A DNA stretch of 64,000 nt from the IMG/VR virus record IMGVR_UViG_3300044640_001495, positions 62,001 through 126,000 of that record. One strand, given 5' to 3'. Below the pieces are notes generated by a model, which was not told the DNA's origin, searched no databases, and worked only from the letters and a program-made list of their open reading frames with translations. This document shows positions 9,818 through 28,146 of the stretch, one piece after another (position 1 is the first letter of the stretch; each line of letters opens with the position of its first letter). A program made the position numbers and the translations under genes.

Positions 9818-9825
9818 CTCAAATT

Positions 9826-10593
9826 TTATTTTTTGACCGGATGAGCTAACAGAGTACATGCATCAAACTCCCATTTTTTTCCGCTTACAGATTTTCCAAA
9901 ATCAAAACTAGACGGCATTTGATGATGATTATTATGCCATCCGTTTCCCCAAAACATTAAGCCTAACATAGGGATATTTCTTGATTTATCTTTAGTTTCA
10001 AAATTTCTATATCCAACGTTGTCACTATGACAGAATGTATTAATAAGTCCCTCACCATGAAATGCAACAATTGTTGGCACAATAGCAAACCAATATAATA
10101 AATTTAAATCAATCAATCCCAGAACTATCCACGATAACAAAATAATTACTTCATAATACTTGGCTGTGAATGCCATTTTTTTATCACGTACTAGGTCAAC
10201 AGCAAACTTGTAGTTTACATTGGTAGGATCATGTTTTAAAATCCAACCCACAAAAGCATGCCATCTTCCAAAAATTGGAGAATGTTCGTCTTTTTCTGTA
10301 TCGGCAAATCTATGATGATATCCTCGGTGTACCGCGGCCCACCAGATTGGATGACCCTGGCATGATAACACACTGGCATAAATTATCAAATTCTCTGCCC
10401 ATGATTTTAAAATGATCGATCTATGAGATGCCCATCTATGAAGTCCTATTGCTACTCCGTACCCACCAATAAAAATATAGCCTGCTAGAAAATACAATAG
10501 ACTGGTAAAATTGTAATCTACGAAAAAAAACAACAAAACCAATAGTATGTGTAAAGGGAAAAACGTAGTTAACAGGTATTTGTAATTTTTCAT
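9826..10593 (-). CDS. Membrane fatty-acid (delta-9-type) desaturase
   Basis: His boxes HRWASH, HRGYHH and WHNNHH; hydrophobic segments; DPHSP-like DEHSP motif. Confidence 0.9.
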   Translation of the reverse strand: MKNYKYLLTTFFPLHILLVLLFFFVDYNFTSLLYFLAGYIFIGGYGVAIGLHRWASHRSIILKSWAENLIIYASVLSCQGHPIWWAAVHRGYHHRFADTEKDEHSPIFGRWHAFVGWILKHDPTNVNYKFAVDLVRDKKMAFTAKYYEVIILLSWIVLGLIDLNLLYWFAIVPTIVAFHGEGLINTFCHSDNVGYRNFETKDKSRNIPMLGLMFWGNGWHNNHHQMPSSFDFGKSVSGKKWEFDACTLLAHPVKK

Positions 10594-10623
10594 AGAGGGA
10601 TGATTCCGATTAAATATATTTAT

Positions 10624-11223
10624 ATGATGCCAAAATCCCTATCGCTTAAATCGAATCCCGGAGAGGACTTGTGGAATGAATGCATGGAAACTATAAAATC
10701 TCGGTGCTGTGCAGATCCATTGTATGAAAATTATGTAAATCTAACTCCTGCACAATATTATTATTTTGTGACAGCGATACACGAAAATAAGATTGTATCC
10801 TTTGGTGCCATAGAATATTCTCCTCACAAATGGGGAGAGAAAATTGCAAGAGTATTAACTAGATTTTGGATACATCCAGATTTTAGAAGCAACGGATTAA
10901 CCAAGTGGGGCCCTAGTGCTGTTAGATTTAGTCCAATTATACTTAACGCTCAGCTTGAATTTTTAAATTCACAGAATAAAATAAAAGTTGCTATGATCAC
11001 AAGAGAAGGAAAATACTCGAAAAGTTTTAAAGAAATAACAAAACTTGCATCGTCTGTTTCAGTTGATTCTTTTGAAATATTAGAAAATATATACAATGTC
11101 TGCGGAGACTCGAACGACGATTCGTGTTATCAAATGGTAGCACTGTCGTCAATAAGCCATGAAGACAAATGGAATGTCTTTTCCGAAGCAATATCTGCTG
11201 GATTCTTTAAAGGACCAAATTAA
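10624..11223 (+). CDS. GNAT-like acetyltransferase (putative)
   Basis: ARVLTRFWIHPDFRSNG resembles GNAT motif A. Confidence 0.5.
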   Translation: MMPKSLSLKSNPGEDLWNECMETIKSRCCADPLYENYVNLTPAQYYYFVTAIHENKIVSFGAIEYSPHKWGEKIARVLTRFWIHPDFRSNGLTKWGPSAVRFSPIILNAQLEFLNSQNKIKVAMITREGKYSKSFKEITKLASSVSVDSFEILENIYNVCGDSNDDSCYQMVALSSISHEDKWNVFSEAISAGFFKGPN

Positions 11224-12074
11224 TGAAGTTTTACGTAAAAGATTGTCCTGCGCACCTGTCATTGTTCCAGTGGATATACGAACAGAGCGATTTCTATACA
11301 GCAATAAATGATATTGCTACATCAACTAAAGTAGACGATATAATAGAATTGCCTCACAAAATTGATATTCCTTCACTTGTAAAAGATACCCTATCAGCAC
11401 TGGAAACGTTTGGAACCAAAGGTTGGCAAACAACCAAAGGTCAAAGTAAGGCCTACGGTGGTCTCAGCATGGTATACAACCCAGATCTAATAGACACAAT
11501 TGATCCTAATCAACATACACTAGGCACACCTGTAAACGCTCCGGATCAATTTTATTACGGCAGTACAGAAAATTTTCGTTCTACAAGAAATACATACTTT
11601 GACAGTTATGGATTTAGAAAACTATCACCATGCATCTCACAAACTAATCTTAAAAATTTTATCAGTGAATTTCGTCTTTCACCTACACGAAGTAGGATAG
11701 CTGTGTTAGATGCCGACATGCATGATAGGGTAGGTGAAGAATTCCTTTGGCACAAAGATGAAACTATATTCGAAAATCTCAGGATCAACATTCCTATCGA
11801 CACTGATTCTTCTTTTCTATTCCAACTCGAAAATAAGCTGCCGACTCATTTAGAGCTAGGAAAAATATATACTTGGGATACAAATTTACCACATAGGGTA
11901 TATGCCACAAAAAAATCTACTAAAAAAAGAACCCATTTAGTATTAGGATTCACGCCCTGGATTGATTATATAGAAAATGAAGATTGCTTTGTATTAAATT
12001 CCCACTTTGGTAAATTACATCCGTTTGATATTCTTCTAAACGGATCAGCACATCAAAGCATTGGTCAGGTATAA
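11223..12074 (+). CDS. AspH-like HxD...H dioxygenase (putative)
   Basis: LWHKDE, LRINIPI and YTWDTNLPHRV...RTHLVLG motifs. Confidence 0.6.
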   Translation: MKFYVKDCPAHLSLFQWIYEQSDFYTAINDIATSTKVDDIIELPHKIDIPSLVKDTLSALETFGTKGWQTTKGQSKAYGGLSMVYNPDLIDTIDPNQHTLGTPVNAPDQFYYGSTENFRSTRNTYFDSYGFRKLSPCISQTNLKNFISEFRLSPTRSRIAVLDADMHDRVGEEFLWHKDETIFENLRINIPIDTDSSFLFQLENKLPTHLELGKIYTWDTNLPHRVYATKKSTKKRTHLVLGFTPWIDYIENEDCFVLNSHFGKLHPFDILLNGSAHQSIGQV

Positions 12075-13306
12075 TTAACAATTATAGAAGAAATTAAATT
12101 TTGATATTTTTCGTTTAAATCGTTAAGATCACTACCTGATATATAAACATATCCGTTATTGCTAATTGCTAAATCGTTCCTTGGAAGATTAACTTTATTA
12201 TTAGTTGGTAATTTAATATAGTCTGCAAGAAAGTCTTTTTTAATCTCTATGCTTTTAATGAGACCCGGTTTTAATCCTAAATCTCTTTTCATACTACACT
12301 TGCTTTTGTTTAACAACATATTTTTATTTTTAAGAATAGAGTTAACTAACTTTGATGCATAGTGATTTTCTCCAGAGTATTGCAATAGATGGCATCCTAC
12401 GGAAACTCGAGCTGCAAAATCAATGAAATAAATATTTCCCTCTTTTAATATCACATCTAGCATGAACGGACAATTATCTAACTCAGTTAAAGAAATAAAC
12501 TTTTCTAATTTAATTTTGATATTTTCATAAAAATCGCTGTTAAAATATTTAGACGGATACACTAATGCTGTTTCAGCCGCATAGGGATATGAATTAGATT
12601 CTATATCATAAAAAAAATCTAAACTAAGAGATTTATTAAGTATGTGTCCAATCACAGAGATTATTGGTCCATCAATATATTCCTGAATTATGTAATCACT
12701 ATCTGCCGAATAATATTCAAAAGTTTTAAATTTTTCACCATGGCTTTCTTGATAATCGTGTACTTTAACATCGACGTCTTTAAAAAAATCTACAAGACTT
12801 TCTCTAGAAGAAATTATTTTTATCCCCAAACTTGCCATTCCCCCTGACGGTTTTACTAAACATGGAAATTTAATATCTGAAGATACAATGTTTAATGTTT
12901 TTTTATTTTTAACAATTTGATAAATTTTAGGAACATTGATCTTTAGATCTTTCCATATTTTGTAATAAACTATTTTTTCTTTAATTTTTTCGTATGATTT
13001 TAATTTAATTCCCGGTAGATCAAATTTACTGTTTATTTCAGCAATTAATTTCATATGATGATCGGGGAATGTAGGATAGATATATTGATATTTTTTTGTT
13101 TCTAATAATTGAGAAAGTAAATTTAAAAATTGATCGGTAGTATCAACAACAAATATGTTATCAAATTTAGATAGATGTGGCTTCATTAGATCAAATTCGG
13201 GATGATCTTTAGGAACAATTATATCTAAATTATAACCTTGATTTATTAAATCATAGATCGTAGATAAATGATGATATCCGCGACATAACAACAAAATATT
13301 ATTCAT
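12065..13306 (-). CDS. ATP-grasp ligase (L-amino-acid-ligase-like)
   Basis: FPCLVKPSGGMASLGI, YIIQEYIDGP and IYFIDFAAR motifs. Confidence 0.8.
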   Translation of the reverse strand: MNNILLLCRGYHHLSTIYDLINQGYNLDIIVPKDHPEFDLMKPHLSKFDNIFVVDTTDQFLNLLSQLLETKKYQYIYPTFPDHHMKLIAEINSKFDLPGIKLKSYEKIKEKIVYYKIWKDLKINVPKIYQIVKNKKTLNIVSSDIKFPCLVKPSGGMASLGIKIISSRESLVDFFKDVDVKVHDYQESHGEKFKTFEYYSADSDYIIQEYIDGPIISVIGHILNKSLSLDFFYDIESNSYPYAAETALVYPSKYFNSDFYENIKIKLEKFISLTELDNCPFMLDVILKEGNIYFIDFAARVSVGCHLLQYSGENHYASKLVNSILKNKNMLLNKSKCSMKRDLGLKPGLIKSIEIKKDFLADYIKLPTNNKVNLPRNDLAISNNGYVYISGSDLNDLNEKYQNLISSIIVNYT

Positions 13307-14474
13307 TTATTAATCTCACAAAATGCCACTTTGAAAATAAATGTTGATATCTTCCTCTTACTTTTCCAAAATCTCGTTGGCTTCTTTCCACTCCTAAATA
13401 CAATCTTTTATCTAATTGAGATAAAAATAGACTATTCATATCTAAAAAACTATCACGACATTTGGTTAATTCTGGATGCTCAAAAATCCAAAAATGTTTA
13501 TCTTCTCTGTCTGCAATATTTGGTTTATCAGCCTGAAAATTATTTGTCCAGTTATCATATAATACTTGCCTTGCTACAGAGTTTTGCATTCTAATAGATA
13601 ATAATGTAAAATCCAATGGCCAATCTTTACTTACATCTGAATAATAATATTGTCTTAAATGAAAATTATCATCAACATATGATGACAACTGATAGGCTTG
13701 TTCCATAGCTAATATTGGGAATTTTGGAGACCAATAAAAATATTCAGTTCCGTATCTATTTTCTTGTGAAGGAATTCCCATCCCTGTACCAGTGTCGGTA
13801 AAACTCATAAACCATTTATTATCTCTATAAGCTAACAACGGTTTATCTATTCCATAAATAGATCCAACTGTTTTACCCTTATTTAATTTGAGAAATTCCG
13901 ATTTACTATATGTCAGCATAAAAGGTATTTCTATATCATTCCATGTGTTAACATGATGCCATAAATCTTCTGTATAAATTTCAGGACTTAAATTATCTGT
14001 CCAATCTGCAATATTGATTTTAATCTGAGGATGATATTGTGACAGCCAATCAAGAACAGGTTTAATGGCAAAGTCCCATTCACTAAGAGTGTTCCTAGCC
14101 GAAGTGTCTAGTGTATTGGCCTTGTAAACTTGAGATTTTATAGCGGCCATTGGCCATTTCACACAAACTTCGTCTAATTTAATACCGTTGTCTATAAAGG
14201 ACCTAAGAACATTATAGCTGTCAGCGCCTCCCGAAAAATATAAAATTAGATAATCGTAGCTATCTCTAATCTGTTGAGCACGTTGTTGATAAAGTTTTTT
14301 GAGAGAAACTTTCCCCAACAAGGATCTATCAAAATTGTTCCAAATTTGATCAAAATATATGTAACTAACTTCCTGATTGGTGTCGGTAGCAAATACCAAT
14401 GCTTGAAATTTATTTTTAAATTTCGTAGCACCTACCTGCCAAAATCCTTCTACTTCTTGATTAAACATGTTCAT
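13299..14474 (-). CDS. PP-loop ATPase-like protein
   Basis: YDYLILYFSGGADSYNVL PP-loop; start refined. Confidence 0.65.
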   Translation of the reverse strand: MNMFNQEVEGFWQVGATKFKNKFQALVFATDTNQEVSYIYFDQIWNNFDRSLLGKVSLKKLYQQRAQQIRDSYDYLILYFSGGADSYNVLRSFIDNGIKLDEVCVKWPMAAIKSQVYKANTLDTSARNTLSEWDFAIKPVLDWLSQYHPQIKINIADWTDNLSPEIYTEDLWHHVNTWNDIEIPFMLTYSKSEFLKLNKGKTVGSIYGIDKPLLAYRDNKWFMSFTDTGTGMGIPSQENRYGTEYFYWSPKFPILAMEQAYQLSSYVDDNFHLRQYYYSDVSKDWPLDFTLLSIRMQNSVARQVLYDNWTNNFQADKPNIADREDKHFWIFEHPELTKCRDSFLDMNSLFLSQLDKRLYLGVERSQRDFGKVRGRYQHLFSKWHFVRLINE

Positions 14475-14524
14475 ATTTATAGACAAAAAAAATTATGGAA
14501 AATTAATATAATAAATACTTTACC

Positions 14525-15019
14525 ATGATATTACAGCCACTATATAAATTTATCAATTTCCAAACTTTACAGAAAGAAGTTTTGGAATTGGTAAAAAAAA
14601 TTAACGTTAACGACAATCAGCTAATATGTCAAGGATTAGAAAACGGTTCAAATGATTGGATCACAGGCATTGGTCGTATTGAAGAATTAGAAGAACAACA
14701 GGAACGAAATTATAAATTTATATATCCAGAGCTTCGTGGGACACTTCTAGAAAAATTTATTAAAGACCACAATGGTTTTAGAACTAGAATAATGTTAATG
14801 AATTCTAGAAAATGTTATTCTATCCATCGAGATCCAACCCCTAGATTGCATTTACCTATAATCACAAATGATCAGTGTTGGATGATATGGCCATATAAAA
14901 ATGAATGCCATCAGCTACATGAGGGAGTTGTGTATCGAGCAGATACAACACAAGATCACACTTTTATTAATGGATCTTTAGATCAAATTAGAATACACAT
15001 TGTAATGTGCATTGATTAA
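14525..15019 (+). CDS. AspH-like HxD...H dioxygenase (putative)
   Basis: YSIHRDP, RLHLPIITN and DTTQDHTFIN...RIHIV motifs. Confidence 0.7.
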   Translation: MILQPLYKFINFQTLQKEVLELVKKINVNDNQLICQGLENGSNDWITGIGRIEELEEQQERNYKFIYPELRGTLLEKFIKDHNGFRTRIMLMNSRKCYSIHRDPTPRLHLPIITNDQCWMIWPYKNECHQLHEGVVYRADTTQDHTFINGSLDQIRIHIVMCID

Positions 15020-15025
15020 TAATAT

Positions 15026-15601
15026 ATGAAAAATACTACAAATTACACCCAATTTAAATTTCCCTTCGATGACATCTTAAAGCCAGGCGTCATCTTAGAT
15101 GGAAGATTTTCAAGACATGATACCTGGGGTTTGGATTTCTTGCCTATAGATGAACTAGTGAAAGATGATGTATCGAAATTTTTTGAAGAAAAAGATCTTC
15201 CTTTAAAAAATATATATTTTATGTATGGTCCTGCGCAAGAATCTTTAGTTATTCATGTTGACGGATTTGTTGAAGAGAACGGAACCTTTCACGGAATTCA
15301 TTGCGGATTAAATTGGATTTATGGTTCTACAAATCATGTGATGAAATGGTATTCATCAGATACTGTTGGAGAAACATCTGTAAACAAAGAAGGACTCCGT
15401 AGAACAAGATGGTCAGCAAGTGACTGTGTATCTATTGAAGAATTAACCATCGCTGTACCAACTTTAGTGAGAACAGATATACCTCATAATGTAGTTAATT
15501 TTAGCAATGAAAAAAGATTCTGTGTAAGTTTAAGGTTCGCTGATATAACTTTGACATATCAGCAAGTTCGAGAAAAACTGCTAGATTATATTTTAATTTA
15601 A
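15026..15601 (+). CDS. Cupin/dioxygenase-like protein (putative)
   Basis: IHVDG ... RTDIPHNVVN ... RFCVSLRF. Confidence 0.55.
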   Translation: MKNTTNYTQFKFPFDDILKPGVILDGRFSRHDTWGLDFLPIDELVKDDVSKFFEEKDLPLKNIYFMYGPAQESLVIHVDGFVEENGTFHGIHCGLNWIYGSTNHVMKWYSSDTVGETSVNKEGLRRTRWSASDCVSIEELTIAVPTLVRTDIPHNVVNFSNEKRFCVSLRFADITLTYQQVREKLLDYILI

Positions 15602-15997
15602 TTACGGCAGTACTCTAGTTAGCTCTAGCTTTGTTTCATCCACAACAACAACAGGTTCGTTGTCTAATTTGATAAGTGTAGCAAACGCAGGTTCGTTTGA
15701 TATTCCGGTGAGTTTATGTCCGCATTTAATTAGATAGTTGTCTCTAGAAGAAAAATAGGTGGATATCTCAGAATTAATTACGGAGGTAAATTCTCTGCAT
15801 TTTGCAACAGATTCGTAATTATATACAGACACTAGTGTTAATCCGTCTTCAGTCCTAGAAATTTCACGACTGATTACTAATCCCGAATTTTGTCTAATAG
15901 TATCAATGATCTCCTGAAAGGCAGCTCCTTCGGGAGTATCCATGTAGAACGGATATTCTTGTGTTAGTCTTTCATAAGTCCAGGTTACTGTTAGCAT
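15602..15997 (-). CDS. Hypothetical protein
   Basis: 131-aa ORF with GAGG SD, preceded by ATAAATA on the minus strand. Confidence 0.7.
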   Translation of the reverse strand: MLTVTWTYERLTQEYPFYMDTPEGAAFQEIIDTIRQNSGLVISREISRTEDGLTLVSVYNYESVAKCREFTSVINSEISTYFSSRDNYLIKCGHKLTGISNEPAFATLIKLDNEPVVVVDETKLELTRVLP

Positions 15998-16039
15998 ATT
16001 AGTTCCTCGTTTAAATACACTATTATTTATCTAAGAGAT

Positions 16040-16963
16040 ATGACAACACTTTATACACCCATCCATTTTAAAAAAAATAACGAAATAGATCCGGAAAACA
16101 GCGAATTTAAAATAGTCTATGTAGACATCGTTCATCGTTGCAATATGGAATGCAGCAATTGCTATCTGCCAAACAGAAGCTACAAAGACATAGAATTTAA
16201 CAAGCTCATTGAAACTATAAGCAAATTTAAAAAAAGAACGGAATTTAGATTAATTGGTGGGGAGCCTACATTACACAAAGATTTACCTAAGATCATAAAA
16301 CTTATAACAAGTATGCCTATCAAGCATCGAATAGTTTTAGTCACAAACGGATTGCGTTTAGCAAATGAAACTTACGTAAAAAAATTAGTGGATGCTGGAT
16401 TAAAAACAGTGTATCTTAGCATGAACGGCGCCGACGATGACACGGTTTATGCTACCATGGATAATTTACGATGTGCAAAGAAAAAAGTTAGAGCATTTCA
16501 AAATTGCGTGGATAATAAGATAAAACTGGCCATTGGTTGTATTCTAGCTAAGGGAATAAACGAACATGTTCCAGATCGTCTGAAAGAGTTGATACAAAAA
16601 AATAATTATCCAGTGGCGTTGGAGTTTAGAAATGTAGGGCAAATTGGTAGATATTCCTTAGAAAAAAATCAAAATTATTCTAGAAAAGAAATTTTAGATA
16701 TTTTAGAAAAAGTTTTTAATTTTGATTCTAATACAGAAGATTGGAAAAATAGTTTAATAGATGATGATTCTTATAGCTGGCATTTTCCTTTAGAAAAAGC
16801 CAAGGCAAAACTGTGTAAGACTACTTCTCTACGTATTACTGATTGGAGTTTAATGGATGAGGGATATCCTGCACAGGACAATCTTAAAAGAGGTAGGATT
16901 ACGGAAAATTTTAAACTGGCTCCTTTTTTCGAGCACCTACGTGAAAACGAAAACGGATATTAA
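16040..16963 (+). CDS. Radical SAM protein (MoaA/NifB/PqqE-like core)
   Basis: CNMECSNC (CxxxCxxC), GGEPTLH and VTNG motifs. Confidence 0.9.
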   Translation: MTTLYTPIHFKKNNEIDPENSEFKIVYVDIVHRCNMECSNCYLPNRSYKDIEFNKLIETISKFKKRTEFRLIGGEPTLHKDLPKIIKLITSMPIKHRIVLVTNGLRLANETYVKKLVDAGLKTVYLSMNGADDDTVYATMDNLRCAKKKVRAFQNCVDNKIKLAIGCILAKGINEHVPDRLKELIQKNNYPVALEFRNVGQIGRYSLEKNQNYSRKEILDILEKVFNFDSNTEDWKNSLIDDDSYSWHFPLEKAKAKLCKTTSLRITDWSLMDEGYPAQDNLKRGRITENFKLAPFFEHLRENENGY

Positions 16964-16964
16964 A

Positions 16965-17795
16965 TTATTTTATTGTGACACGATACAGGGATCGTCGGTG
17001 CCCGTCATATCCACCAGTAGCTCTGTGTAAGGTACAACGATTATCCCAGAGCACTAGTTGATTATTAGCCCACCGATGTGTATAGATAAATTTTGGATTT
17101 TTCTGGTGATTAAAAATTTCTGCTAGTATTTTGTAAGATTTATCTTTGTCTAAACCTTCAATTCCAATAGTATAACCTCGATTGCAGTTGATTACTTTCT
17201 TTCCTGTTTCAGGATGCTCCAACACCAACGGATGATGTTGGATCTCATACGCTTCATCTGAATATCTAAGTTTCATTGACCTACCAACATCTGACACCCC
17301 GTATCTAGCATCGGGCGCATACCCGCGTCTAGCAGAATTTATTCCTCGATGATTTTCTAAAATCTGTTTAAGGTCATCGTGAAGTGTGTCGTATGCTTTA
17401 TACAGATCGGAAAATAGTGTATCGCCACCACTCGGTGGAATTTCTTTAGCATATAATGCAGTTCCTTTTGGTGGCTCTTTCATGTGGAACCAATCAGAAT
17501 GCCAACCTTCGGCAAATATTTCAGTAGATTCGTTAGGCTCTCTCAGCACTTCTGCTACATAGTCTGATCCGTTAATTGGATCAATAAACGGATCTCGACA
17601 ATGCTCACCAAAATATAATACAAATTTTTCCAAGTCATTCACTGTAAGATGCTGATCAACAAAAATCAATACTTGGTACTTATTCCATAATTCTTTTATT
17701 TCCGTTATGTAGTGTGAATCTATTTTGGAAGAAAAATCTACGCCACTAATATAGGCGCCGTATTGAGTGTCTGTTGGAGTAATTGAAATTTTCAT
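16965..17795 (-). CDS. TauD/TfdA-family 2OG dioxygenase
   Basis: WHSD, GGDTLFSD and WDNRCTLHRA...R motifs. Confidence 0.92.
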   Translation of the reverse strand: MKISITPTDTQYGAYISGVDFSSKIDSHYITEIKELWNKYQVLIFVDQHLTVNDLEKFVLYFGEHCRDPFIDPINGSDYVAEVLREPNESTEIFAEGWHSDWFHMKEPPKGTALYAKEIPPSGGDTLFSDLYKAYDTLHDDLKQILENHRGINSARRGYAPDARYGVSDVGRSMKLRYSDEAYEIQHHPLVLEHPETGKKVINCNRGYTIGIEGLDKDKSYKILAEIFNHQKNPKFIYTHRWANNQLVLWDNRCTLHRATGGYDGHRRSLYRVTIK

Positions 17796-18553: not shown

Positions 18554-19365
18554 TAGTCTGTTCCTGTTCTAAGCGATCCAGGTTTAGCTATCAGCTCAAT
18601 AATTCGTCTAGCAAAATCAAAATCTCCAGGATGTGTTTCGTAGCTGTAATGTCCGGGACGTGCATGATGATTATTGTGCAGTCCGCTGCCCAGTGTAATC
18701 CAATTAAAGATACCCCTTAAATTTCTGCTGTTATCCCCTGTTTCATGTTCTCTAGTTCCATAGTTTGGCGTATGTCCAAAAGTTGCAATTATTGCTTCAC
18801 TGTGTGTTTGTAGAACTCCAGCACCCATAAAAAAGAAAACGGCCAATTCCCATTTTATAACAAATAACAATACAAATGTGATCCAGAAAATTTTATAGTA
18901 ATGATCGCTCATAAATTTCATTACAGGATCCCTAAGCATTTTTCTACAAAACATTGGGTTAAGTTTAGGAGGATTGTTCTGCCATGTCAAATACGCATGC
19001 CAAAAACCTTTAGTAGGAGTATGAGGATCTAGATCAGTATCACTATATCTATGATGATAGGGAGTATGTATGTTTGCCATCCAAACTGGACTGCCTCTAC
19101 CTGCTAGCAGTCCTAGATATACTCCAACAATTTCTAAAATTTTATGCGTCTGGAAGGCAGAATGTGAAATATACCTATGATAGAAAATATTAAATCCAAT
19201 GAATCCAATAAAGAACCATCCTACATACGCAGCTAACAGCCACCATGCCGATGTCATATCTAACAGTACCATCGCGATACCACTGATAAATATCACATGC
19301 TGCGGTATCGTTATTGTTCTTAGATTTTTATTGATTGAAATTTTTTGTAGTAGATTTGTTAACAT
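18553..19365 (-). CDS. Membrane fatty-acid (delta-9-type) desaturase
   Basis: HRYISH, HTPYHH, DPHTP and HNNHH motifs. Confidence 0.9.
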   Translation of the reverse strand: MLTNLLQKISINKNLRTITIPQHVIFISGIAMVLLDMTSAWWLLAAYVGWFFIGFIGFNIFYHRYISHSAFQTHKILEIVGVYLGLLAGRGSPVWMANIHTPYHHRYSDTDLDPHTPTKGFWHAYLTWQNNPPKLNPMFCRKMLRDPVMKFMSDHYYKIFWITFVLLFVIKWELAVFFFMGAGVLQTHSEAIIATFGHTPNYGTREHETGDNSRNLRGIFNWITLGSGLHNNHHARPGHYSYETHPGDFDFARRIIELIAKPGSLRTGTD

Positions 19366-19382
19366 ACCCTTATTTAATTAAA

Positions 19383-20195
19383 ATGATTCACACCACTCAA
19401 ATTCCTTCTCAACACTGGCCAAAAAAGTTTGATCAATTTCGAGATTTGATTTATATTCCTCTAGATCTCCCAGAACCTCCTAAGGTCGATATCGATCTAT
19501 TTACAGATTGGGCCTTCACAAAAGCCCCCAAACTTGTAGGAAATATTAATCATCCCGAGACCGGTCAAAAAATTATGCATTTCGAGGAACGGGGTATGAA
19601 AGGCTGGGGATTTTATCCCTGGATCCAAGTTAGTGCATTTCATCACGGATACAGCAATTCTTGGATTTCAGAGTTTGATAAGATATTTCCAGATGTAGTT
19701 GAATACATTCATCTTTTCCCCTACAATATATTGTCCGGAGTAACTATCCTTTTACAAAAATCAAACGTGGCAGCTCCATTGCACACCGATGCCGATGATT
19801 GGCTAGGGATGAGATTTTATCTTCACAACGAAGTTAAAGAGGATGCGTTATATTTTTGTCCTAGAAAAACCAACGAAAACAATCGCATATCCACTTACAT
19901 TATAGAATCAGAAAATGTGTACCCACAAGAATGGGAGAAATACGTAGATTTAAATAAAAAAATTTACAGCAGTCATCCTTGCCAGAGACACGCCTGGGCG
20001 TTGACTAGTACGAGAGCAGCACACGGTATCGAAGCATTTGAATACGATCGATGTGCTAGGGTGACATTTTTAGTTCATTCGCATCGACCTTCTGTGAATC
20101 ACAACGCCTGGAACCCTGATAAATTGTATGACTTACTTACAAGATCTGTAAACAAATATTCAGATTATGCAATATGGTGGGAATCTTCAAAATAA
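19383..20195 (+). CDS. Hypothetical protein, possible HxD...H dioxygenase
   Basis: PLHTDAD ... RAAHG ... RVT; start refined to MIHTTQ. Confidence 0.5.
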   Translation: MIHTTQIPSQHWPKKFDQFRDLIYIPLDLPEPPKVDIDLFTDWAFTKAPKLVGNINHPETGQKIMHFEERGMKGWGFYPWIQVSAFHHGYSNSWISEFDKIFPDVVEYIHLFPYNILSGVTILLQKSNVAAPLHTDADDWLGMRFYLHNEVKEDALYFCPRKTNENNRISTYIIESENVYPQEWEKYVDLNKKIYSSHPCQRHAWALTSTRAAHGIEAFEYDRCARVTFLVHSHRPSVNHNAWNPDKLYDLLTRSVNKYSDYAIWWESSK

Positions 20196-20198
20196 AAA

Positions 20199-21635
20199 AT
20201 GCAAGTACTCATACTCACTACTAACACTGATCCTCGTAGACAGGTACGATATCTTGGACCATACCAGATAGCTTGGTGGTTGAGATCTAATGGCTATTCA
20301 ACGCAGGTACTTGATTACATTTACTTTATGACAAAGGAACAGAGATTATCTCTATTAAAAAAATTCATTACGACAGAAACAAAAATAGTAGGATATGCTC
20401 CTTTTGCTTTGCTTAAAACAAATCAAAGATTTGTACATGGTGAACAACTAATTCATGATATCCTAGATGAAGTCAAAGAAAATTTTCCCTGGGTTAAAAT
20501 TGTCATCGGGGGAGTCTGGGCAATAAATTGGATCAACTACGGTCGGAAAAAAATTAATTGGAAGGTAGATGCTGTGTTTAAAGATGAAGCGGAACACAGC
20601 TTTCTCGAATACTGCCATTATATTTTTAAAGGATCTTCTCATCCTAAGTTTACCATAGAAAACGATGTTAAGATAATACATCCTACACAAAAATATGATA
20701 TTCAAAATTGTTCAATGCGTTATGAAAAAAATGATTTTATCCTACCAGAAGAATCTCTTCCTTTAGAATTAAGTAGAGGTTGTATATTTAAATGCAAGTT
20801 TTGTCAATATCCTAACATAGGAAAAGACAAAGATGATTTTAATAAATCTATGGAGAGTATTAAACAATCTTTAATTCATAACTATGAAAACTTTGGAACC
20901 ACTAGATATCATCTATCAGATGATACACTGAATAGCCATAGAGAAAGAACAAGAGCATTCTGTGAGATGGTAAAGCAATTACCTTTCACAATAGAATATA
21001 TAGGATATGCTAGACTAGACCTGTTGTACATATGGCCGGAACAACAAGAACTATTACCCGAAAGTGGTTTGGTAAGTTGCCATTTTGGTATCGAATCATT
21101 CGACCCCGAATCTTGTAAAATCATAGGAAAAGGTTGGGGCGCCAAAAATAATAAATCTTCACTTAGAGACATCAGAACAAAATGGGGTGATGATGTGATA
21201 ATAAACTGCTCTATGATAGTGGGCCTTGGAAAAGAAACAGAACAAGACTGGCAAGATTCTCAAGAATGGTTTATACAGAATAAAATTCACGACTGGTTTT
21301 ATAATGTGCTATCGATACATAAAGGCGTTGCATCAAGTGAATTTGAAAGAGAATATGAAAAATATGGTTATAGATTTATTAATGATAGTGATTGGGAATG
21401 GGTTTCTAGCCATATGACTAGAGACAGAGCCACCGAATGGGTTAACAATAATATAAAAAAAATAGCTGGTATAGCAGTTCCTAGTGTTTGGAATTATTCG
21501 GCGCATAGAAATATAGGATTTTCCAAACAAGAGATTCTCGACAGCAATTATCTAGATCTTTTCGAAATCCGAGTAAAAAATCAGATGACAGAAAAACTTA
21601 TAGAAAAATATTATAAGCTGGCAATGGAGTATTAA
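20199..21635 (+). CDS. Cobalamin-binding-type radical SAM enzyme (class B methyltransferase-like)
   Basis: N-terminal Rossmann-like domain (LGPYQIAWWLR, IVIGG), SRGCIFKCKFC, DDT, and FGIES motifs. Confidence 0.85.
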   Translation: MQVLILTTNTDPRRQVRYLGPYQIAWWLRSNGYSTQVLDYIYFMTKEQRLSLLKKFITTETKIVGYAPFALLKTNQRFVHGEQLIHDILDEVKENFPWVKIVIGGVWAINWINYGRKKINWKVDAVFKDEAEHSFLEYCHYIFKGSSHPKFTIENDVKIIHPTQKYDIQNCSMRYEKNDFILPEESLPLELSRGCIFKCKFCQYPNIGKDKDDFNKSMESIKQSLIHNYENFGTTRYHLSDDTLNSHRERTRAFCEMVKQLPFTIEYIGYARLDLLYIWPEQQELLPESGLVSCHFGIESFDPESCKIIGKGWGAKNNKSSLRDIRTKWGDDVIINCSMIVGLGKETEQDWQDSQEWFIQNKIHDWFYNVLSIHKGVASSEFEREYEKYGYRFINDSDWEWVSSHMTRDRATEWVNNNIKKIAGIAVPSVWNYSAHRNIGFSKQEILDSNYLDLFEIRVKNQMTEKLIEKYYKLAMEY

Positions 21636-21636
21636 C

Positions 21637-22218
21637 ATGGAAAAATGTTTTAGAAAACTTAATCTTGGAATTCCCGAAGATCATAAAATTTTTAAAGAAT
21701 ATCGTAGTTTCAATTATAGTCAGGTAGAAGTTAAATTATATGATTCGTCAAAAACTTTTAAACAATATAATCTACCTAAAGACTATTTTTTAGGAACCGA
21801 AGTACACAAAGTAATGTGTGATCTAAATTTACGTGCATCTATATTTTTAATAGAAGCCAACCATTTTTACAATTGGCATAGAGACGCATGGCGGAATATA
21901 ACTCTTAACTTGACGCTAGGTGAGGATGAAAATTATCTTGTTTTATTCGCTCCTGATGCAAATCCTAAAGAATCTACTGGGTCTATGATGTACGAAAGAT
22001 TTATCGAACTCAAATACGATCACAACAAATTTGTGTTATTGAACACACAAATTCCACATTTCACTGTCACTACAGGAATCAAAGATAGGTATCTATTAAC
22101 AATTGCACATTATTCTGGAAAACCAACAGAGTCTCTAAAAAATCGACCATGCGACGATTACACAGAATTTGAAAATACACTTCAATATTTCGCTGAACGG
22201 AATCTAGTCAAAGATTGA
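21637..22218 (+). CDS. HxD...H dioxygenase-like protein (putative)
   Basis: YNWHRDA ... LLNTQIPHFT ... RYLLT. Confidence 0.55.
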   Translation: MEKCFRKLNLGIPEDHKIFKEYRSFNYSQVEVKLYDSSKTFKQYNLPKDYFLGTEVHKVMCDLNLRASIFLIEANHFYNWHRDAWRNITLNLTLGEDENYLVLFAPDANPKESTGSMMYERFIELKYDHNKFVLLNTQIPHFTVTTGIKDRYLLTIAHYSGKPTESLKNRPCDDYTEFENTLQYFAERNLVKD

Positions 22219-22860
22219 TTATAAAGAAATTAAAAAATCATTATTTCTATATTGATTTTTCAAATAACCAATTCGATAAAGAAGATCTACATTCCAGGTT
22301 CTATTTCTCATCATTTGCCTATATCTTGGATGTGACGGCATTGTACCAGCAGGAATAATTGCCTCGTCAAAAAATTCATACCTATCTTTTATTATTGGTA
22401 TCTGTTGTCTCATTCTATTCCAGCGGTTGGTAGTTTTAGGATTAGCCACAATAAAATCATAGGAATAATATCCTATACTTTCTGCATGTGAAATGAGCAA
22501 TGTGCTGGTGTCAGCAATGCCATTATCCACAGCATTGAAAATAGAATTATTAGGACTACAAAGTATTATACATTGCCGCCAAGATTTGATCATATTCCAG
22601 AACTGACCAATAGCAATACATTTAATATTTTCTTCTTTGTCAAATACTAGAGCAATCTTATTTTTAGTTTGAGTTTCATTAGAAATCATTGTTTCGATAG
22701 ATTTGATAAAAACAGAGATATCAAAATCTTTATCATCAAAAGGATACGACCAAATTTTGGAAGTGTTCTGTTTATAATTTTTGGTGTCAACTAATAATTT
22801 TTCTAGATATACTAGATCATCTATAGTTCCAAACCTAGAGGAATATTCAGGATTTATCAT
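22219..22860 (-). CDS. Hypothetical protein (possible GNAT-like fold)
   Basis: 213-aa ORF; only weak pattern resemblance. Confidence 0.5.
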   Translation of the reverse strand: MINPEYSSRFGTIDDLVYLEKLLVDTKNYKQNTSKIWSYPFDDKDFDISVFIKSIETMISNETQTKNKIALVFDKEENIKCIAIGQFWNMIKSWRQCIILCSPNNSIFNAVDNGIADTSTLLISHAESIGYYSYDFIVANPKTTNRWNRMRQQIPIIKDRYEFFDEAIIPAGTMPSHPRYRQMMRNRTWNVDLLYRIGYLKNQYRNNDFLISL

Positions 22861-23782
22861 AGAAGTTGTGCGGCAACATTTCTGATTTTAGATATTTTGA
22901 AAAACAAAGTCTATTTTCTTTTATTCCACGATTGTATTCTTCGAATGACTCAGTAGAAGTTGCGAAAAAAACACACTTTGACATTTCTACTTTTAAAATT
23001 TCACAAAACTTTTCTTGTACTGCACGATATTTTTGATAATTGTAATCGGCAGTATATCGTTGTAATAGTTTTAATCCAACCGCAGCCGACAGTCTATTGA
23101 CGTATTTGTTTTTATTATAAACATATAAAGCATCATCATTGTCTTCTTTGGTTAGTCTCATGCCGATTCTAAGGTGTTGTACCGGAAAATTTTTACTAAG
23201 GCTGAATGTGATATCAGTAATACATTCATAAGAAAAATCAAAATTGATTCCGCCACAAACTCCAAAGTAGCAACAGTCGATTAACACTGGAACTTTTAGT
23301 GCTTCACAAGTTTCTAAAACCGAATCAGTCATTACATGTTCATTTCCGGTGCCAGCGAACGGAAGACTAAAAATCACCACGTCATTTTCTTGTATTGGTT
23401 CATCTTCAATACAGACACTCTGATCAAAATATAGCTTGGCAGCTATTGAATGATACATGTATTCGCCTCGAAAATACCTTAACCTACGATTACGATTTTT
23501 TAGATAAAATTTATCAAAAGCTTCTGTGGTTCCGTTTGAAAAAGCGAGGCCTTGGAATTTTTCCAAACCTATAACTTGATTAGAGGTGGTTTTCATTATC
23601 CATGCTTTATACTCTTTTGTAAATTTATCGTGTATTTCATCATCATTCATACAATCATTTTGCAGAACATCAACAATGATATCAGATACTTCTTGTTCTA
23701 AATCTTGATCTTTAATGCAATGTACACTGCCAAAAGGTAATTTTTTTAATTCTAGTAATTTATTCCAAGTATTGTTTTTCAT
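22847..23782 (-). CDS. PLP-dependent aminotransferase-like enzyme (fold type I)
   Basis: IDCCY and FSLSK..LRIG motifs; start refined to MKNNTW. Confidence 0.7.
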   Translation of the reverse strand: MKNNTWNKLLELKKLPFGSVHCIKDQDLEQEVSDIIVDVLQNDCMNDDEIHDKFTKEYKAWIMKTTSNQVIGLEKFQGLAFSNGTTEAFDKFYLKNRNRRLRYFRGEYMYHSIAAKLYFDQSVCIEDEPIQENDVVIFSLPFAGTGNEHVMTDSVLETCEALKVPVLIDCCYFGVCGGINFDFSYECITDITFSLSKNFPVQHLRIGMRLTKEDNDDALYVYNKNKYVNRLSAAVGLKLLQRYTADYNYQKYRAVQEKFCEILKVEMSKCVFFATSTESFEEYNRGIKENRLCFSKYLKSEMLPHNFYDKS

Positions 23783-23838
23783 GAAATATTTATCATAGCA
23801 CTTTATTGCATAAATATTTTCACTTACGGAGATGAGTA

Positions 23839-24741
23839 GTGATACAAAAATTTTTATTAGGACTGAGCATGATGTTTTTTTTATCTGCTCCCAGCCAAGC
23901 ATTCGACGCTGGTTCCCAACTCATTAAAGTGGTGATGCCATTTGCTCCAGGAGGCGGTGTTGATCAAACTTTTAGGCATTTTGAAAATTGGGCAGCGAAA
24001 AAAAACATTAAGTTTGTAGCAGTTTACAGACCAGGAGCCGAAGGATTGATTGGCATGAATGAAATTGCCGCAATGCCCAAAGACGGATATCATATTTCTT
24101 TTGCAACAGCCGGCACCATAGCCGTCCAAAGATTGAAAAATCCTCAAGCAGAATTAGAAACAGTGACGTTGATAAAAAATAGTATTATGGCGTTTGTCAC
24201 TCATAAAGATAGTGGCATACGGTCTCTAACTGATTTGTATCAAGGTAATCCAAAAACTCTAGCCTACGGCGCACCCGGACAACTAATGACTATACAGCAG
24301 TTAATAGAACTTTCAGATGGAAAAATGAAAAGTGCCACTCTTGTGCCCTACAAAGGTGGAGCTCCAGTAGTACAAGATATTGCAGGCAATCATGTGCAGT
24401 TTGCAGCAGTACCATTGTTGATCACAAAGAGTTTTGTTGATTCGGGAACCATCCGATTACTGGCTGTAGACAGCACAACTAGATTAGCAGAATATCCCAA
24501 CATTCCCACGTTTAAAGAAATCTTCCCTAAGTGGAAAAGTACTGACGGATTTGCCGTGGTATTGCCCAAGGGAACTGATACAAAAGCTGTAGAATTTTGG
24601 AATTCTATATTGAAAGAATATGTCACAGATCAAAAAGTACAAGCTGACTTTTTGAAAGACTACAATATGTCGCAAAAATTTGGTAAAGAAGAATTGGAAA
24701 AAACTGTTTCTAATGCAATTAACGCATTAGAAAAAAAATAA
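23839..24741 (+). CDS. Tripartite tricarboxylate transporter substrate-binding protein (Bug/TctC family)
   Basis: Signal peptide, VVMPFAPGGGVD, PGAEGLIG..., VPYKGGAPVVQDIAGNHV and IPTFKE motifs. Confidence 0.85.
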   Translation: MIQKFLLGLSMMFFLSAPSQAFDAGSQLIKVVMPFAPGGGVDQTFRHFENWAAKKNIKFVAVYRPGAEGLIGMNEIAAMPKDGYHISFATAGTIAVQRLKNPQAELETVTLIKNSIMAFVTHKDSGIRSLTDLYQGNPKTLAYGAPGQLMTIQQLIELSDGKMKSATLVPYKGGAPVVQDIAGNHVQFAAVPLLITKSFVDSGTIRLLAVDSTTRLAEYPNIPTFKEIFPKWKSTDGFAVVLPKGTDTKAVEFWNSILKEYVTDQKVQADFLKDYNMSQKFGKEELEKTVSNAINALEKK

Positions 24742-24771
24742 TATGCACCTTGCTGTCATAAGAAAAATGTC

Positions 24772-25536
24772 ATGAATATCAACCAATACATCGATAGGGT
24801 AAAATTTAAAACCCTACCACAAGATTTTAATCATCAAGATGGTAAGAACTATGAAAGCTCTTACGAATACACCAAGACCTTTAGCAACTATCATTTTGAT
24901 AAATTTAAACAGGAGCATGAGGGTGAATGGTATCATCGGCTGGGAAGATTCAAAGGAGATTGGGCAGACGATGTTGCTAAAATTATAGATAAATCAAAAT
25001 CATTATCCTGGGATCAAAGTACGGCGGCAGGTCAACGTCCGGGATTCCCTGGGGGTGTTAGTCCAATGAGAACACAAGAGCAAAACGACAGAAAGGCTCA
25101 CGGTTTAGACCATGTTGATCATACTAACTTAGTTTTAGAAGAATATCTAGATCAGTTTCCTAAAATTAAAAAAATGGTAGACCATTGGCATTTAGAAAAA
25201 GTTAGTTATCGTTGCCATGTGCAATGGCCTGGTCAGACGTTCGCCATGCACATTGATAAATTATGGCATCGCAATCCCACAGACCCGTCAAAAATAGTTA
25301 GGATTATTGTACATCTAGAAGATTACGAACCCGGCCAGATCCTTATATACGGTAATGCAGTACACACTCAGTGGAGAGCTGGCGATGTTCATATGTTCGA
25401 TACCTTGAATGTTCCGCATGGAACTTTTAATATTTCAAATAAACCAAGACCAAATATCACTATCACAGGATTGAGATCAGCCCTTACTGATCAAAGATTG
25501 CAAGAAGCTACTGCTGAATCAGAATATTGTATATAA
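24772..25536 (+). CDS. AspH-like HxD...H dioxygenase (putative)
   Basis: PGQTFAMHIDK ... WRAGDV...NVPHGTFN...R. Confidence 0.65.
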   Translation: MNINQYIDRVKFKTLPQDFNHQDGKNYESSYEYTKTFSNYHFDKFKQEHEGEWYHRLGRFKGDWADDVAKIIDKSKSLSWDQSTAAGQRPGFPGGVSPMRTQEQNDRKAHGLDHVDHTNLVLEEYLDQFPKIKKMVDHWHLEKVSYRCHVQWPGQTFAMHIDKLWHRNPTDPSKIVRIIVHLEDYEPGQILIYGNAVHTQWRAGDVHMFDTLNVPHGTFNISNKPRPNITITGLRSALTDQRLQEATAESEYCI

Positions 25537-25574
25537 TGCATCCGTAAAAAACATCGCATATGGTAAAATAAAAA

Positions 25575-26315
25575 ATGAATAAAAACTTTGTTATTGTTGG
25601 GACTCCTCGTAGCGGCACTACGTTTGTCTGCGATGTGCTGAACGAATTTGATGATATTTGGATTCCAGAGTTTCCTAATTACGAACCGTTTAATCCGCAT
25701 AACTTACACAGATTAGCTAACTCGATGAAAAATAATTCATTCGATCAAGATTTAATCATTAAAAAATTTATTAGTGTAAAATCAAAGAAAAATGTAGATT
25801 ATTTTGGTTTTAAAACTTTCTTGTCCTTTCACTCAGATTTAAAAAATTTAATTAAAGATAATAATCTAGATGTGATCTTAATTTTAAGAAAAGATATTTG
25901 GAAAGTCATAGGAAGTATGCTGATCGCAATAGACCATAATGACTACATAGGTAGCTCTAAAAAACATGATCCGTTTATTTTTGTTGAATCCAAAAGAGAA
26001 GTAAGAAGAATAATGACATTTTTCAATCAACTTTGTAGAACATATTGGGAACTAGAGAATTTATTTGCTAAAGATTCTAATATTATCGAAAAACTATATT
26101 TTGAAGATATTGTAAATAATAACATTGCAAACAATTTAGACACTTATTTTAACAAAAAAATTATTTTTGATCATAATTATAACGACACCGACGATATCAA
26201 TTCTTATATTGGAAATTTTGAAGAACTGCAAAGTTTAATTATAAAAGAAGTTAAAAAAAATCACACACATTATTCAGCCCTTCCTTCATATATTGTTAAT
26301 CAATTAGTGTTATGA
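25575..26315 (+). CDS. Sulfotransferase (Stf0-like)
   Basis: IVGTPRSGTT 5'-PAPS-binding loop; ILILRKD 3'-PB-like motif. Confidence 0.8.
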   Translation: MNKNFVIVGTPRSGTTFVCDVLNEFDDIWIPEFPNYEPFNPHNLHRLANSMKNNSFDQDLIIKKFISVKSKKNVDYFGFKTFLSFHSDLKNLIKDNNLDVILILRKDIWKVIGSMLIAIDHNDYIGSSKKHDPFIFVESKREVRRIMTFFNQLCRTYWELENLFAKDSNIIEKLYFEDIVNNNIANNLDTYFNKKIIFDHNYNDTDDINSYIGNFEELQSLIIKEVKKNHTHYSALPSYIVNQLVL

Positions 26316-26686
26316 TACTACAAAAAGTTATATTCGAAGAAAAAAATAGAAATGGCACAAGTGTGGATGATTTTTATTATCGAGGATTAGAAGAAAAACT
26401 CCAAGGAAAAAAAGGCACAGGAGTTAGAGCGTTAGCAGCTGATTTTATCAGACAGGGCAGAATCCTAGATAGATTTTTAATCTTAGATGAAACAGGATGT
26501 AAATTAGAAATTTATACTTTTTTTAAAGATGAAGAATCATTTTCTGAATTTATTAATCATCCTGTAAATCAAAATGCAAAAAAGTTTTGGCAAGATCGAG
26601 ATTGGCAAAGAACTGCCACAAAAACTGTAATTGCTGATTTTTTGAACGTGAGAAACAGACTCGGACAACTTAAATCTATAATCTAA
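26312..26686 (+). CDS. Hypothetical protein
   Basis: 124-aa ORF translationally coupled to the sulfotransferase. Confidence 0.65.
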   Translation: MILQKVIFEEKNRNGTSVDDFYYRGLEEKLQGKKGTGVRALAADFIRQGRILDRFLILDETGCKLEIYTFFKDEESFSEFINHPVNQNAKKFWQDRDWQRTATKTVIADFLNVRNRLGQLKSII

Positions 26687-27125
26687 TTGATCGATTTGTT
26701 TTAAAGACCCAATCCCAAAAAGGTGTTCCGATACCATAATTGCATCTACTTTCTGTATGATGCAAATAATGCCATTGACCAGATGTGTACCAAGGATACA
26801 AATTGAATTTTCTATTGTGTTCTAGCCTTTCTTGTATAATGGCTGCATAAACATAAAATAAAATAATTATCCACCATTGACCGGTGATCCAGCTGAAAAT
26901 AAAAGTAGGTAGAACTTCAGTTATCCAATAATCAAACGTGCTAGGCCAATTGTCATTGAACAGAAAAATGTTATTCCAATGCCAAACTATCTTGTGTTTT
27001 TTAATATAAGCGTGATGATGAAAATGTAGTTTTGACAGAAATGAAATTTTATGACTGGCTCGGTGTATCCAGTATATCATAAAAGTCCATAGAAAGAAAT
27101 AAAATATTATTTCAATACCGATCAT
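26676..27125 (-). CDS. Fatty-acid hydroxylase / sterol desaturase family protein
   Basis: His boxes HRASH, HFHHH and HYLHH; NYG...WDWVFKT C-terminus. Confidence 0.85.
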   Translation of the reverse strand: MIGIEIIFYFFLWTFMIYWIHRASHKISFLSKLHFHHHAYIKKHKIVWHWNNIFLFNDNWPSTFDYWITEVLPTFIFSWITGQWWIIILFYVYAAIIQERLEHNRKFNLYPWYTSGQWHYLHHTESRCNYGIGTPFWDWVFKTNRSIRL

Positions 27126-28024: not shown

Positions 28025-28030
28025 ATAGTT

Positions 28031-28141: not shown

Positions 28142-28146
28142 GTTTT

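Follow-up and report, generated by a model that had tools for sequence, protein, structure and literature searches.

Divergent membrane desaturases in the accessory island of a lake-water jumbo phage: a candidate lipid-tailoring programme

The delta-9-type membrane desaturases described from phages, namely vFAD-I and vFAD-II of cyanophages and the fatty-acid desaturases of cryopeg viruses, are found in large myoviruses, where they lie in hypervariable regions (PMC5776448, PMC7300359). Viral desaturases have so far been treated as single "fluidity" genes. The single viral enzymes that have been tested are plain DesC-like delta-9 desaturases acting on C16 chains (PMC5776448), and those from the cold cryopeg habitat have been read as membrane-fluidity genes (PMC7300359). 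Our literature searches likewise turned up single viral desaturases only, with no multi-copy arrays and no phage modules that combine a desaturase with an acyl carrier protein (ACP). Sets of desaturases are known from polyyne pathways, in which three of them jointly act on an ACP-bound acyl chain (PMC9828172), and both JamB-JamC and the polyyne "desaturase triad" place a desaturase beside an ACP (PMC9828172, PMC8406139). Here we analyze bases 62001-126000 of the IMG/VR virus record IMGVR_UViG_3300044640_001495, a stretch of 64,000 nucleotides hereafter called the window, which carries three membrane desaturase genes, des1 to des3, and a short fatty-acid hydroxylase gene in a low-GC accessory island. 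A fourth desaturase, Des4, is encoded elsewhere in the same genome. Positions refer to the window unless marked "genome".

The source genome is that of a 353-kb tailed jumbo phage from lake water. The record comprises 353,123 bp and is 98% complete by CheckV. The window contains genes for a T4 gp9/10-like baseplate protein, tail-fibre-like proteins and a clamp loader, whose nearest match (55.6%) is in the Pseudomonas jumbo phage PA5oct, and also thyX and phoH; the label "tailed phage" given by a first-pass annotation is therefore appropriate. The stretch 16965-19365, which holds two of the desaturase genes, was found letter-identical in 17 lake-water metagenome runs. The first-pass annotation, made from the letters of the window, had noted three delta-9-type desaturases and the hydroxylase, and had proposed sequential tailoring of an acyl chain rather than simple membrane fluidisation. 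Its four open reading frames (ORFs) are placed exactly, all on the minus strand, and all have complete His boxes and pass their Pfam cut-offs (29.7 bits for FA_desaturase, PF00487; 31 bits for FA_hydroxylase, PF04116; Table 1). Its count of three desaturases is right for the window but missed Des4, which lies outside it.

In our preferred reading, which is tentative and to which we assign a probability of roughly 45%, Des1-Des4 would be active, functionally distinct desaturases that serve a lipid-tailoring programme of the phage and not bulk fluidisation. They would be made in the host inner membrane alongside the other tailoring enzymes of the island, namely a GNAT-fold acyltransferase, PP-loop and ATP-grasp ligases, two radical S-adenosylmethionine (radical-SAM) enzymes, TauD- and LpxO-type oxygenases and the mini hydroxylase, and the product would be a specialised fatty-acyl lipid bearing several double bonds and/or hydroxyl groups. 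We infer that the substrate is an acyl chain, that the enzymes act jointly on one molecule and in sequence on one chain, and that the product is of this nature. The tailoring half of the earlier proposal thus finds support in old, constrained and non-redundant paralogues, in an island of tailoring enzymes and in ACP links among relatives, the sequential half being our inference as well.

All four proteins belong to the SCD/DesC type. Des1 aligns with mouse SCD1 (4YMK) over residues 37-247 (~210; E 1.2e-15), in register at the outer His boxes, at the ninth histidine after the fourth helix, at the asparagine four residues before it and at the GYR...SRN loop. Together with the PF00487 matches, this alignment justifies the term "delta-9-type" as a statement about fold and family, not as proven regiospecificity. 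The desaturases have two hydrophobic hairpins, and at 234-270 aa they are shorter than the solved SCD1 chains (318-339 aa). In translation, the three His boxes read HRWASH, HRGYHH and HNNHH in Des1, HRYFTH, HRMHH and HNNHH in Des2, and HRYISH, HTPYHH and HNNHH in Des3; in Des4, which is very divergent and sits on a long branch, they read HRSQAH, HRKHH and HNGHH. The nine ligand histidines are aligned in all four proteins, the ninth following the fourth transmembrane helix. Two features vary. Des1 and Des3 read HX3HH at the second box, where SCD1 has HX2HH, and the asparagine four residues before the ninth histidine (N265 of SCD1, a water-bridged iron ligand) is kept in Des1, Des2 and Des4 but is alanine in Des3. 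Across the viral clade described below, this site is occupied by N in 116 cases, T in 27, G in 10, D in 7, S in 7 and A in 5. As part of the best explanation of these sequences, Des1-Des4 are predicted to be catalytically competent four-helix di-iron membrane acyl desaturases.

The paralogues share only 24-33% identity with one another, and each has orthologues of its own in other phage contigs, which supports the view that they are old and not recent redundant duplicates. Orthologues of Des3 occur in four related loci (L022, L020, L019 and L105), and in L022 the Des3 orthologue is followed by an orthologue of Des2 (74-75% identical). A metagenome protein collection contains 114 homologues of Des1 (50-95% identical) and 223 of Des3, nearly all unnamed and ~255 aa long. 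Comparison with strain variants in IMG/VR gave ratios of non-synonymous to synonymous polymorphism (pN/pS) of 0.05 for Des3, 0.07 for Des2, 0.13 for Des1 and 0.06 for the TauD-family protein encoded next to Des2; all four are under strong purifying selection.

These data also bear on whether the proteins might act on a non-acyl substrate, such as a sphingoid base, a quinone, a carotenoid or a hopanoid side chain, or might be non-catalytic membrane proteins. The desaturase superfamily includes enzymes for non-fatty-acyl substrates. The hydroxylase superfamily covers such substrates too (PMC12971839), and the variant second His box, the loss of the asparagine in Des3, and the ABC1/UbiB kinase and Rieske oxygenases encoded in related phages would all fit. 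However, the closest solved relative, SCD1, is an acyl-CoA desaturase with which all ligands align, the nine histidines are kept under low pN/pS, and the adjacency of ACP genes in relatives points to acyl chains. We therefore judge this possibility very unlikely.

To place the proteins in a wider context, we searched IMG/VR with a profile of the Des3 group, which returned more than 516 relatives, and fetched 78 loci, each covering ±10 kb. A tree of 113 sequences, including the four copies from this phage and counting L019 as viral, was built by a quick search with support from the Shimodaira-Hasegawa-like approximate likelihood ratio test (SH-aLRT) only, as were all our trees. It unites all 55 desaturases from viral loci, which comprise this phage and the loci fetched from IMG/VR and metagenomes, with 28 unnamed metagenome matches in a single clade (99% SH-aLRT), apart from solitary bacterial and cyanobacterial desaturases. 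The viral proteins are homologous to the SCD/DesC family and form a separate, virus-dominated clade. All nine histidines are kept in 172 of 178 viral copies. With copies counted within about 10 kb in 63 dereplicated locus groups, 17 groups have three or more desaturases, 16 have two and 30 have one, so that 33 of the 63 are multi-copy (2-11). Some sets are ancient and common to distant loci: L019 shares one with L020, and the window shares one with L022. Core genes 40-85% identical to those of this phage occur in many of the loci, which accordingly derive from one broad jumbo-phage lineage.

Two arrays illustrate the upper end of the range. In L179 (IMGVR_UViG_3300013006_001903), positions 1308-16635 hold 11 full-length, mutually divergent desaturases within 17.8 kb. 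Six of these overlap in a single run, and the same stretch encodes an ACP, a phosphopantetheinyl transferase (PPTase), a ketosynthase, a Rieske protein and a PP-loop protein. L134 (IMGVR_UViG_3300009703_000012) has seven head-to-tail desaturases at 10004-15538; five of these form a lineage-specific clade, which shows that local tandem duplication enlarges the arrays as well.

The matches obtained from cellular genomes are distant. Among the 600 matches listed for the same profile in contigs of GTDB species genomes, the best are 26-36% identical and are ordinary acyl-CoA desaturases, and 401 sampled alphaproteobacterial genomes gave best identities of 32-37%, nearly always as a single copy. L019, a 256-kb ENA scaffold, carries three tandem viral-clade desaturases after a methyltransferase gene (9181-11489). 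This contig (GC 0.35-0.42) looks alphaproteobacterial, with a GroEL 69% identical to that of Rhizobiales and with LysR and GreA present, and the clade is for that reason virus-dominated and not virus-exclusive. L019 may belong to a lineage of hosts or to one from which the desaturase genes came.

The viral desaturases have recurrent direct neighbours. An ACP of ~80 aa with a DSL motif (44-54 bits to Pfam PP-binding) lies directly beside a desaturase in 12 of 12 loci, a GNAT-like protein of ~184 aa (window member 10600-11223) in 14 of 16, and a radical-SAM enzyme of ~298 aa (window member 16040-16963) in 13 of 14. The ACP is commoner in multi-copy loci (12/33 vs 3/30, p=0.018), the GNAT gene in single-copy loci (11/30 vs 3/33, p=0.014). 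A PP-loop gene is present in 24-30 of 83 desaturase loci, and subsets of the loci encode a ketosynthase, a PPTase, a FabA-like dehydratase, a Rieske oxygenase or an acyl-AMP ligase (the last in L014 and L111). At 3000-11000 of L017/L018, a small set resembling type II fatty-acid or polyketide synthases surrounds the Des1 orthologue of a related phage; it comprises a ketosynthase, two ACPs, a FabA/ApeP-like dehydratase, a PPTase, a Rieske oxygenase and an ABC1/UbiB kinase. The islands are mosaic, their content differing between relatives.

The family-wide recurrence of multi-copy sets and adjacent ACPs supports non-redundant tailoring of acyl chains. The main competing explanation is plain remodelling of the host membrane, in which each desaturase works alone on host phospholipid chains, with its own preference for position, chain length or head group, and the neighbouring oxygenases are unrelated cargo carried by a hypervariable island; its purpose would be fluidity in cold lake water or some need of jumbo-phage infection. 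The tested viral enzymes, all delta-9 on C16 (PMC5776448), and the interpretation given to those from cold habitats (PMC7300359) are in its favor, as are the lake-water habitat, the lack of an ACP or ligase encoded by this phage, the mosaic nature of the island and a KdsA-like gene in the window, which suggests envelope remodelling. However, four to eleven divergent paralogues exceed what fluidisation needs, paralogue sets are conserved between distant loci, the direct neighbours (ACP, GNAT and radical-SAM) are fixed, and Des2 is coupled to a TauD-type gene. Membrane remodelling explains the copy number, the conserved sets and the fixed neighbours poorly, and we regard it as somewhat unlikely. 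If, instead, phages maintain sets of specialised desaturases linked to carrier proteins and tailoring enzymes, the outcome would be defined lipid products and a new class of phage-encoded secondary metabolism. The viral family would then also offer a large, untapped source of regio-diverse membrane desaturases that are short (~250 aa) and perhaps easily expressed. By the published descriptions, vFADs are single auxiliary metabolic genes for fluidity; they resemble neither the viral family described here, in which arrays reach 11 copies and adjoin ACP genes, nor this genome, in which four old paralogues occur and two are coupled with a TauD-type oxygenase.

The relation to JamABC and polyyne cassettes needs to be considered separately for this phage and for its relatives. 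The related phages resemble such cassettes in the adjacency of desaturase and ACP and in the presence nearby of a PPTase, ketosynthase or acyl-AMP ligase, and the chemistry in these ACP-wired relatives is probably thiotemplated, by analogy with JamABC and the polyyne cassettes. For the viral family at large, the nearest analogue in mechanism is the polyyne "desaturase triad" (PMC9828172, PMC8406139). This phage is like a polyyne cassette in bringing several SCD-type desaturases together, but its partner genes differ: they encode GNAT, radical-SAM and PP-loop proteins and 2-oxoglutarate (2OG) oxygenases. As references for the tree we used six ACP-linked desaturases from plasmid cassettes of Streptomyces, Polaromonas and Ralstonia, which were assigned by annotation and gene order and serve as proxies for JamB and TtuB. 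Four of the six, namely polyyne desaturases A and B, Polaromonas desaturase 1 and the Ralstonia ACP-linked desaturase, are excluded from the viral clade. The other two fall outside the JamB-like group: Polaromonas desaturase 2 sits among ordinary cellular desaturases, and Streptomyces desaturase C, on a very long branch, falls inside the viral clade without firm placement.

The JamB/TtuB-type acetylenases put forward in the first-pass annotation as a precedent therefore find no support as a model for this phage: it has neither the ACP, ligase, rubredoxin and ferredoxin partners nor a special affinity in the tree, where the viral clade stands apart from four of the six references. Because of these missing partners and the separation in the tree, alkyne or polyene chemistry is for this phage an analogy and not a finding. 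A strict acetylenase or polyyne pathway, in which three desaturases build an alkyne or polyyne toxin from a fatty acid carried on an ACP, would match the desaturase count of the triad (PMC9828172, PMC8406139) and the ACP adjacency, PPTase, ketosynthase and acyl-AMP ligase of relatives. It would also fit the plasmid tblastn matches of Des1, among the best of which is a desaturase from the cassette of Streptomyces pADI95-16a (order FAAL-Des-Des-ACP-Des-hydrolase-rubredoxin, FAAL denoting fatty acyl-AMP ligase). The score of this match, 108 bits, is however only slightly above the 95-101 bits of ordinary cyanobacterial desaturases, the acyl-AMP ligase, dedicated ACP and rubredoxin are absent from the genome, and the viral clade stands apart from the one holding polyyne desaturases A and B and the Polaromonas FAAL-Des-ACP and Ralstonia ACP-linked enzymes. 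We consider such a pathway highly improbable here. A broader proposal is that an aquatic jumbo-phage lineage has lipid natural-product machinery of its own (2-11 desaturases, ACP, PPTase, ketosynthase, GNAT and radical-SAM enzymes) that makes, during infection, a polyunsaturated, possibly alkyne or polyene, lipid serving as toxin, signal or envelope component, with this phage carrying a reduced version that works on host ACP. We think this unlikely.

Several observations weigh against our preferred reading, a joint tailoring programme. The whole 353-kb genome has no match to ACP (PF00550) or AMP-binding ligase (PF00501) families, none to rubredoxin or 2Fe-2S ferredoxin (Fer2) and none to PlsC-type acyltransferases (PF01553), and the ketosynthase, PPTase and FabA-like proteins of a related phage gave no tblastn match to it. 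With no ACP, ligase or electron donor of its own, the phage would have to draw on host acyl carriers or lipids and on host reductants; the substrate would be host acyl-ACP or host membrane lipids, and ferredoxin-type proteins of the host would supply electrons. Bacterial polyyne cassettes combine an FAAL, an ACP and three desaturases with a thioesterase and a rubredoxin; the only alpha/beta hydrolase seen in this genome adjoins Des4, and no search aimed at thioesterase families was made. Des1 lies 7 kb away from Des2 and Des3, alone with the GNAT gene. Single-copy loci are where the GNAT-Des pair typically occurs, so that Des1 may serve a pathway other than that of Des2 and Des3. The plain delta-9 activity of the tested single viral enzymes also counts on this side. 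A prediction of a complex between Des3 and Des2 scored 0.00, which we list here although it is evidence neither way.

Further support comes from gene organization. The stop codon of des3 overlaps the start of des2 (TAATG) and the stop codon of des2 overlaps the start of the TauD-family gene (ATGA), so that Des3-Des2-TauD constitutes a single translationally coupled unit, in agreement with the tandem, coupled arrangement of the two desaturases that had been noted earlier. The best solved relatives of the TauD-family protein are RdpA (163 bits), TauD (125) and AtsK (86), and the Des-TauD adjacency is seen twice more in L020. The similar island of the cultured pelagimyophage Mosig, which combines a desaturase with TauD and LpxO-like genes and is described below, also speaks for a tailoring programme. 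Contigs of 92-97% identical relatives covering TauD, Des2, Des3 and their neighbours (15161-19730) occur in two freshwater metatranscriptome libraries (X18 and X19); such short contigs from RNA libraries hint at expression in nature but are not proof of transcription.

Table 1. Coordinates of the desaturase genes and other features (window positions unless marked "genome")
Feature	Position	Strand	Evidence
Des1, SCD/DesC-type membrane desaturase, 255 aa	9826..10593	-	PF00487 56.2 bits; HX4H / HX3HH / HX2HH + N-x3-H
Des2, SCD/DesC-type desaturase, 253 aa	17792..18553	-	PF00487 33.8 bits; HX4H / HX2HH / HX2HH + N-x3-H
Des3, SCD/DesC-type desaturase, 270 aa	18553..19365	-	PF00487 50.5 bits; HX4H / HX3HH / HX2HH
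Des4, SCD-type desaturase, 234 aa	genome 6105-6809 (L003:1489-2193), outside window	+	PF00487 46.2 bits
Mini FA_hydroxylase-superfamily di-iron protein, 149 aa	26676..27125	-	PF04116 50.9 bits; three His boxes
TauD/TfdA-family Fe(II)/2OG dioxygenase, last gene of Des3-Des2-TauD operon	16965..17795	-	PF02668 191.5 bits
GNAT-fold acyltransferase, divergent from Des1	10600..11223	+	weak PF00583 match; model pLDDT 85.6
PP-loop ATP-pyrophosphatase-fold protein (SGGxDS), overlaps Des1 end	8927..9859	-	QueC-like P-loop match, residues 76-141 only
ATP-grasp ligase	12065..13306	-	PF13535 at 4.9e-9; orthologue in related phage L014
395-aa protein of virus-only family	13299..14486	-	no Pfam match; atlas clusters 100% viral
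Asp/Arg beta-hydroxylase family (LpxO/OlsC family) 2OG oxygenase	14525..15019	+	PF05118 24.8 bits, cut-off 22.6 (marginal)
Radical-SAM enzyme (MoaA/Tes-like core)	16040..16963	+	PF04055 63 bits; NCBIfam TrsS, Tes, MoaA below cut-off
B12-binding radical-SAM (methyltransferase-like) enzyme	20199..21635	+	PF04055 53.6 bits; NCBIfam PhpK-family 73.6 bits, below cut-off
TctC-family periplasmic solute-binding protein	23839..24741	+	PF03401 96 bits
Sulfotransferase-like protein (weak)	25575..26315	+	PF00685 and PF13469, both below cut-off
APS-kinase-like P-loop kinase, coupled to mini hydroxylase gene	27122..27916	-	PF01583 44 bits
Low-GC accessory island	8000..28400		between tail-fibre-like gene (5807-7591, Mtd_N) and thyX (29466-30128)
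Fe/Mn superoxide dismutase (39665-40225) and IscU/NifU_N Fe-S scaffold (40345-40734)	39665..40734	+	PF02777 80 bits; PF01592 185 bits

The mini hydroxylase is unusually short and belongs to protein-atlas clusters of 135-147 aa that are 96-100% viral. Its His boxes read HRASH, HFHHH and HYLHH in translation. A 57% identical orthologue occurs in L156, and in L020 a homologue lies directly 3' of the Des3 orthologue. The kinase encoded with it, which resembles adenosine 5'-phosphosulfate (APS) kinases, has a 69% identical orthologue in the multi-desaturase locus L177. The modeled GNAT-like protein has a generic GNAT fold (Z about 12). A LuxI/FeeM type was considered for it, since the top Foldseek hits were CoA-dependent N-acyl homoserine lactone synthases (BjaI), but the hit list was flat and VIA re-alignment led to generic GNATs.

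These enzymes raise the possibility of an aminolipid or lipid A kit, in which the GNAT protein N-acylates an amine in the manner of OlsB or of N-acyl amino acid synthases, the hydroxylases and desaturases decorate the product, and the cell surface is altered, for instance against superinfection. OlsC, OlsD and LpxO are lipid 2-hydroxylases of the Asp/Arg-hydroxylase family, and OlsE is a member of the FA_hydroxylase superfamily (PMC12971839); the island holds both enzyme families, by marginal matches or through virus-dominated subfamilies, together with the GNAT-Des adjacency and ATP-dependent ligases. The "host recognition cluster" islands of pelagimyophages and cyanomyophages, which lie beside tail-fibre genes, have moreover been read as serving surface modification (PMC7029224). 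A similar island is present in the cultured pelagimyophage Mosig, with a desaturase, TauD, two Asp/Arg hydroxylases (LpxO-like), MoaA-like radical-SAM genes and a GNAT gene, although Mosig has one desaturase, of 216 aa, compared with four in this 353-kb jumbo phage. Unlike the ornithine-lipid set, however, the genome has no OlsA/PlsC-type partner, and the GNAT model is specific to none of OlsB, FeeM and LuxI, so that the protein is not assignable to OlsB. The PF05118 match, the sole one in the genome, is marginal, and the mini hydroxylase comes from virus-dominated clusters with no tested member. Such a kit is in our judgment distinctly unlikely.

Other proteins of the island recur near viral desaturases as well, the 395-aa protein in 14 loci and the B12-binding radical-SAM enzyme, by BLAST, in 17. 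The PP-loop protein (model pLDDT 88.8) has weak, superfamily-level matches only, to TtuA, NAD synthetase and Asn synthetase. In language-model features, the 395-aa protein lies near the PP-loop family, and the two may on that basis be distant paralogues. The TctC-family gene is also present in the islands of L020, L112, L114 and L131, and the neighbours of Des4 encode a GT2 glycosyltransferase, a HAD-like protein and the hydrolase mentioned above, which is PGAP1-like and 191 aa long. Ten unannotated ORFs of the island yielded nothing usable from Pfam even at loose thresholds.

The island (~20 kb) has a GC content of 0.28-0.36, compared with 0.40-0.47 in its flanks, and genes on both strands. 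Four IMG/VR contigs carry the same island, as does a 22-kb contig from one lake-water run, which shows zero differences. Megablast of positions 9000-28000 against phage records returned zero matches, and tblastn with Des1 against such records matched two entries only, Pelagibacter phage Mosig and one labelled Acinetobacter phage MD-2021a. In the latter (CAKLQH020000002.1; L024), the desaturase region is clearly chromosomal, with trpB/C, btuB, baeSR and aidB, and the record is probably a bacterial sequence filed as phage.

Elsewhere in the window, eight tRNA genes (Ala, Thr x2, Met, Pro, Gly x2 and Arg) are clustered at positions 33-4330. A 2453-aa ORF at 41384-48745 has a T4 gp9/10-like N-terminus and an E1 FCCH-like domain and is followed by three structural ORFs of 820-895 aa. 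A PTPS/QueD-like gene lies at 35661-36167, and a DAHP_synth_1 family gene at 36349-37197 is of a size that suits KdsA (Kdo-8-phosphate synthase, lipopolysaccharide core). The superoxide dismutase and IscU-type scaffold genes are located 12 kb downstream of the island and could plausibly support its many iron and Fe-S enzymes; the Des1 orthologue of the related phage L016 has a NifU homologue ~1.2 kb upstream.

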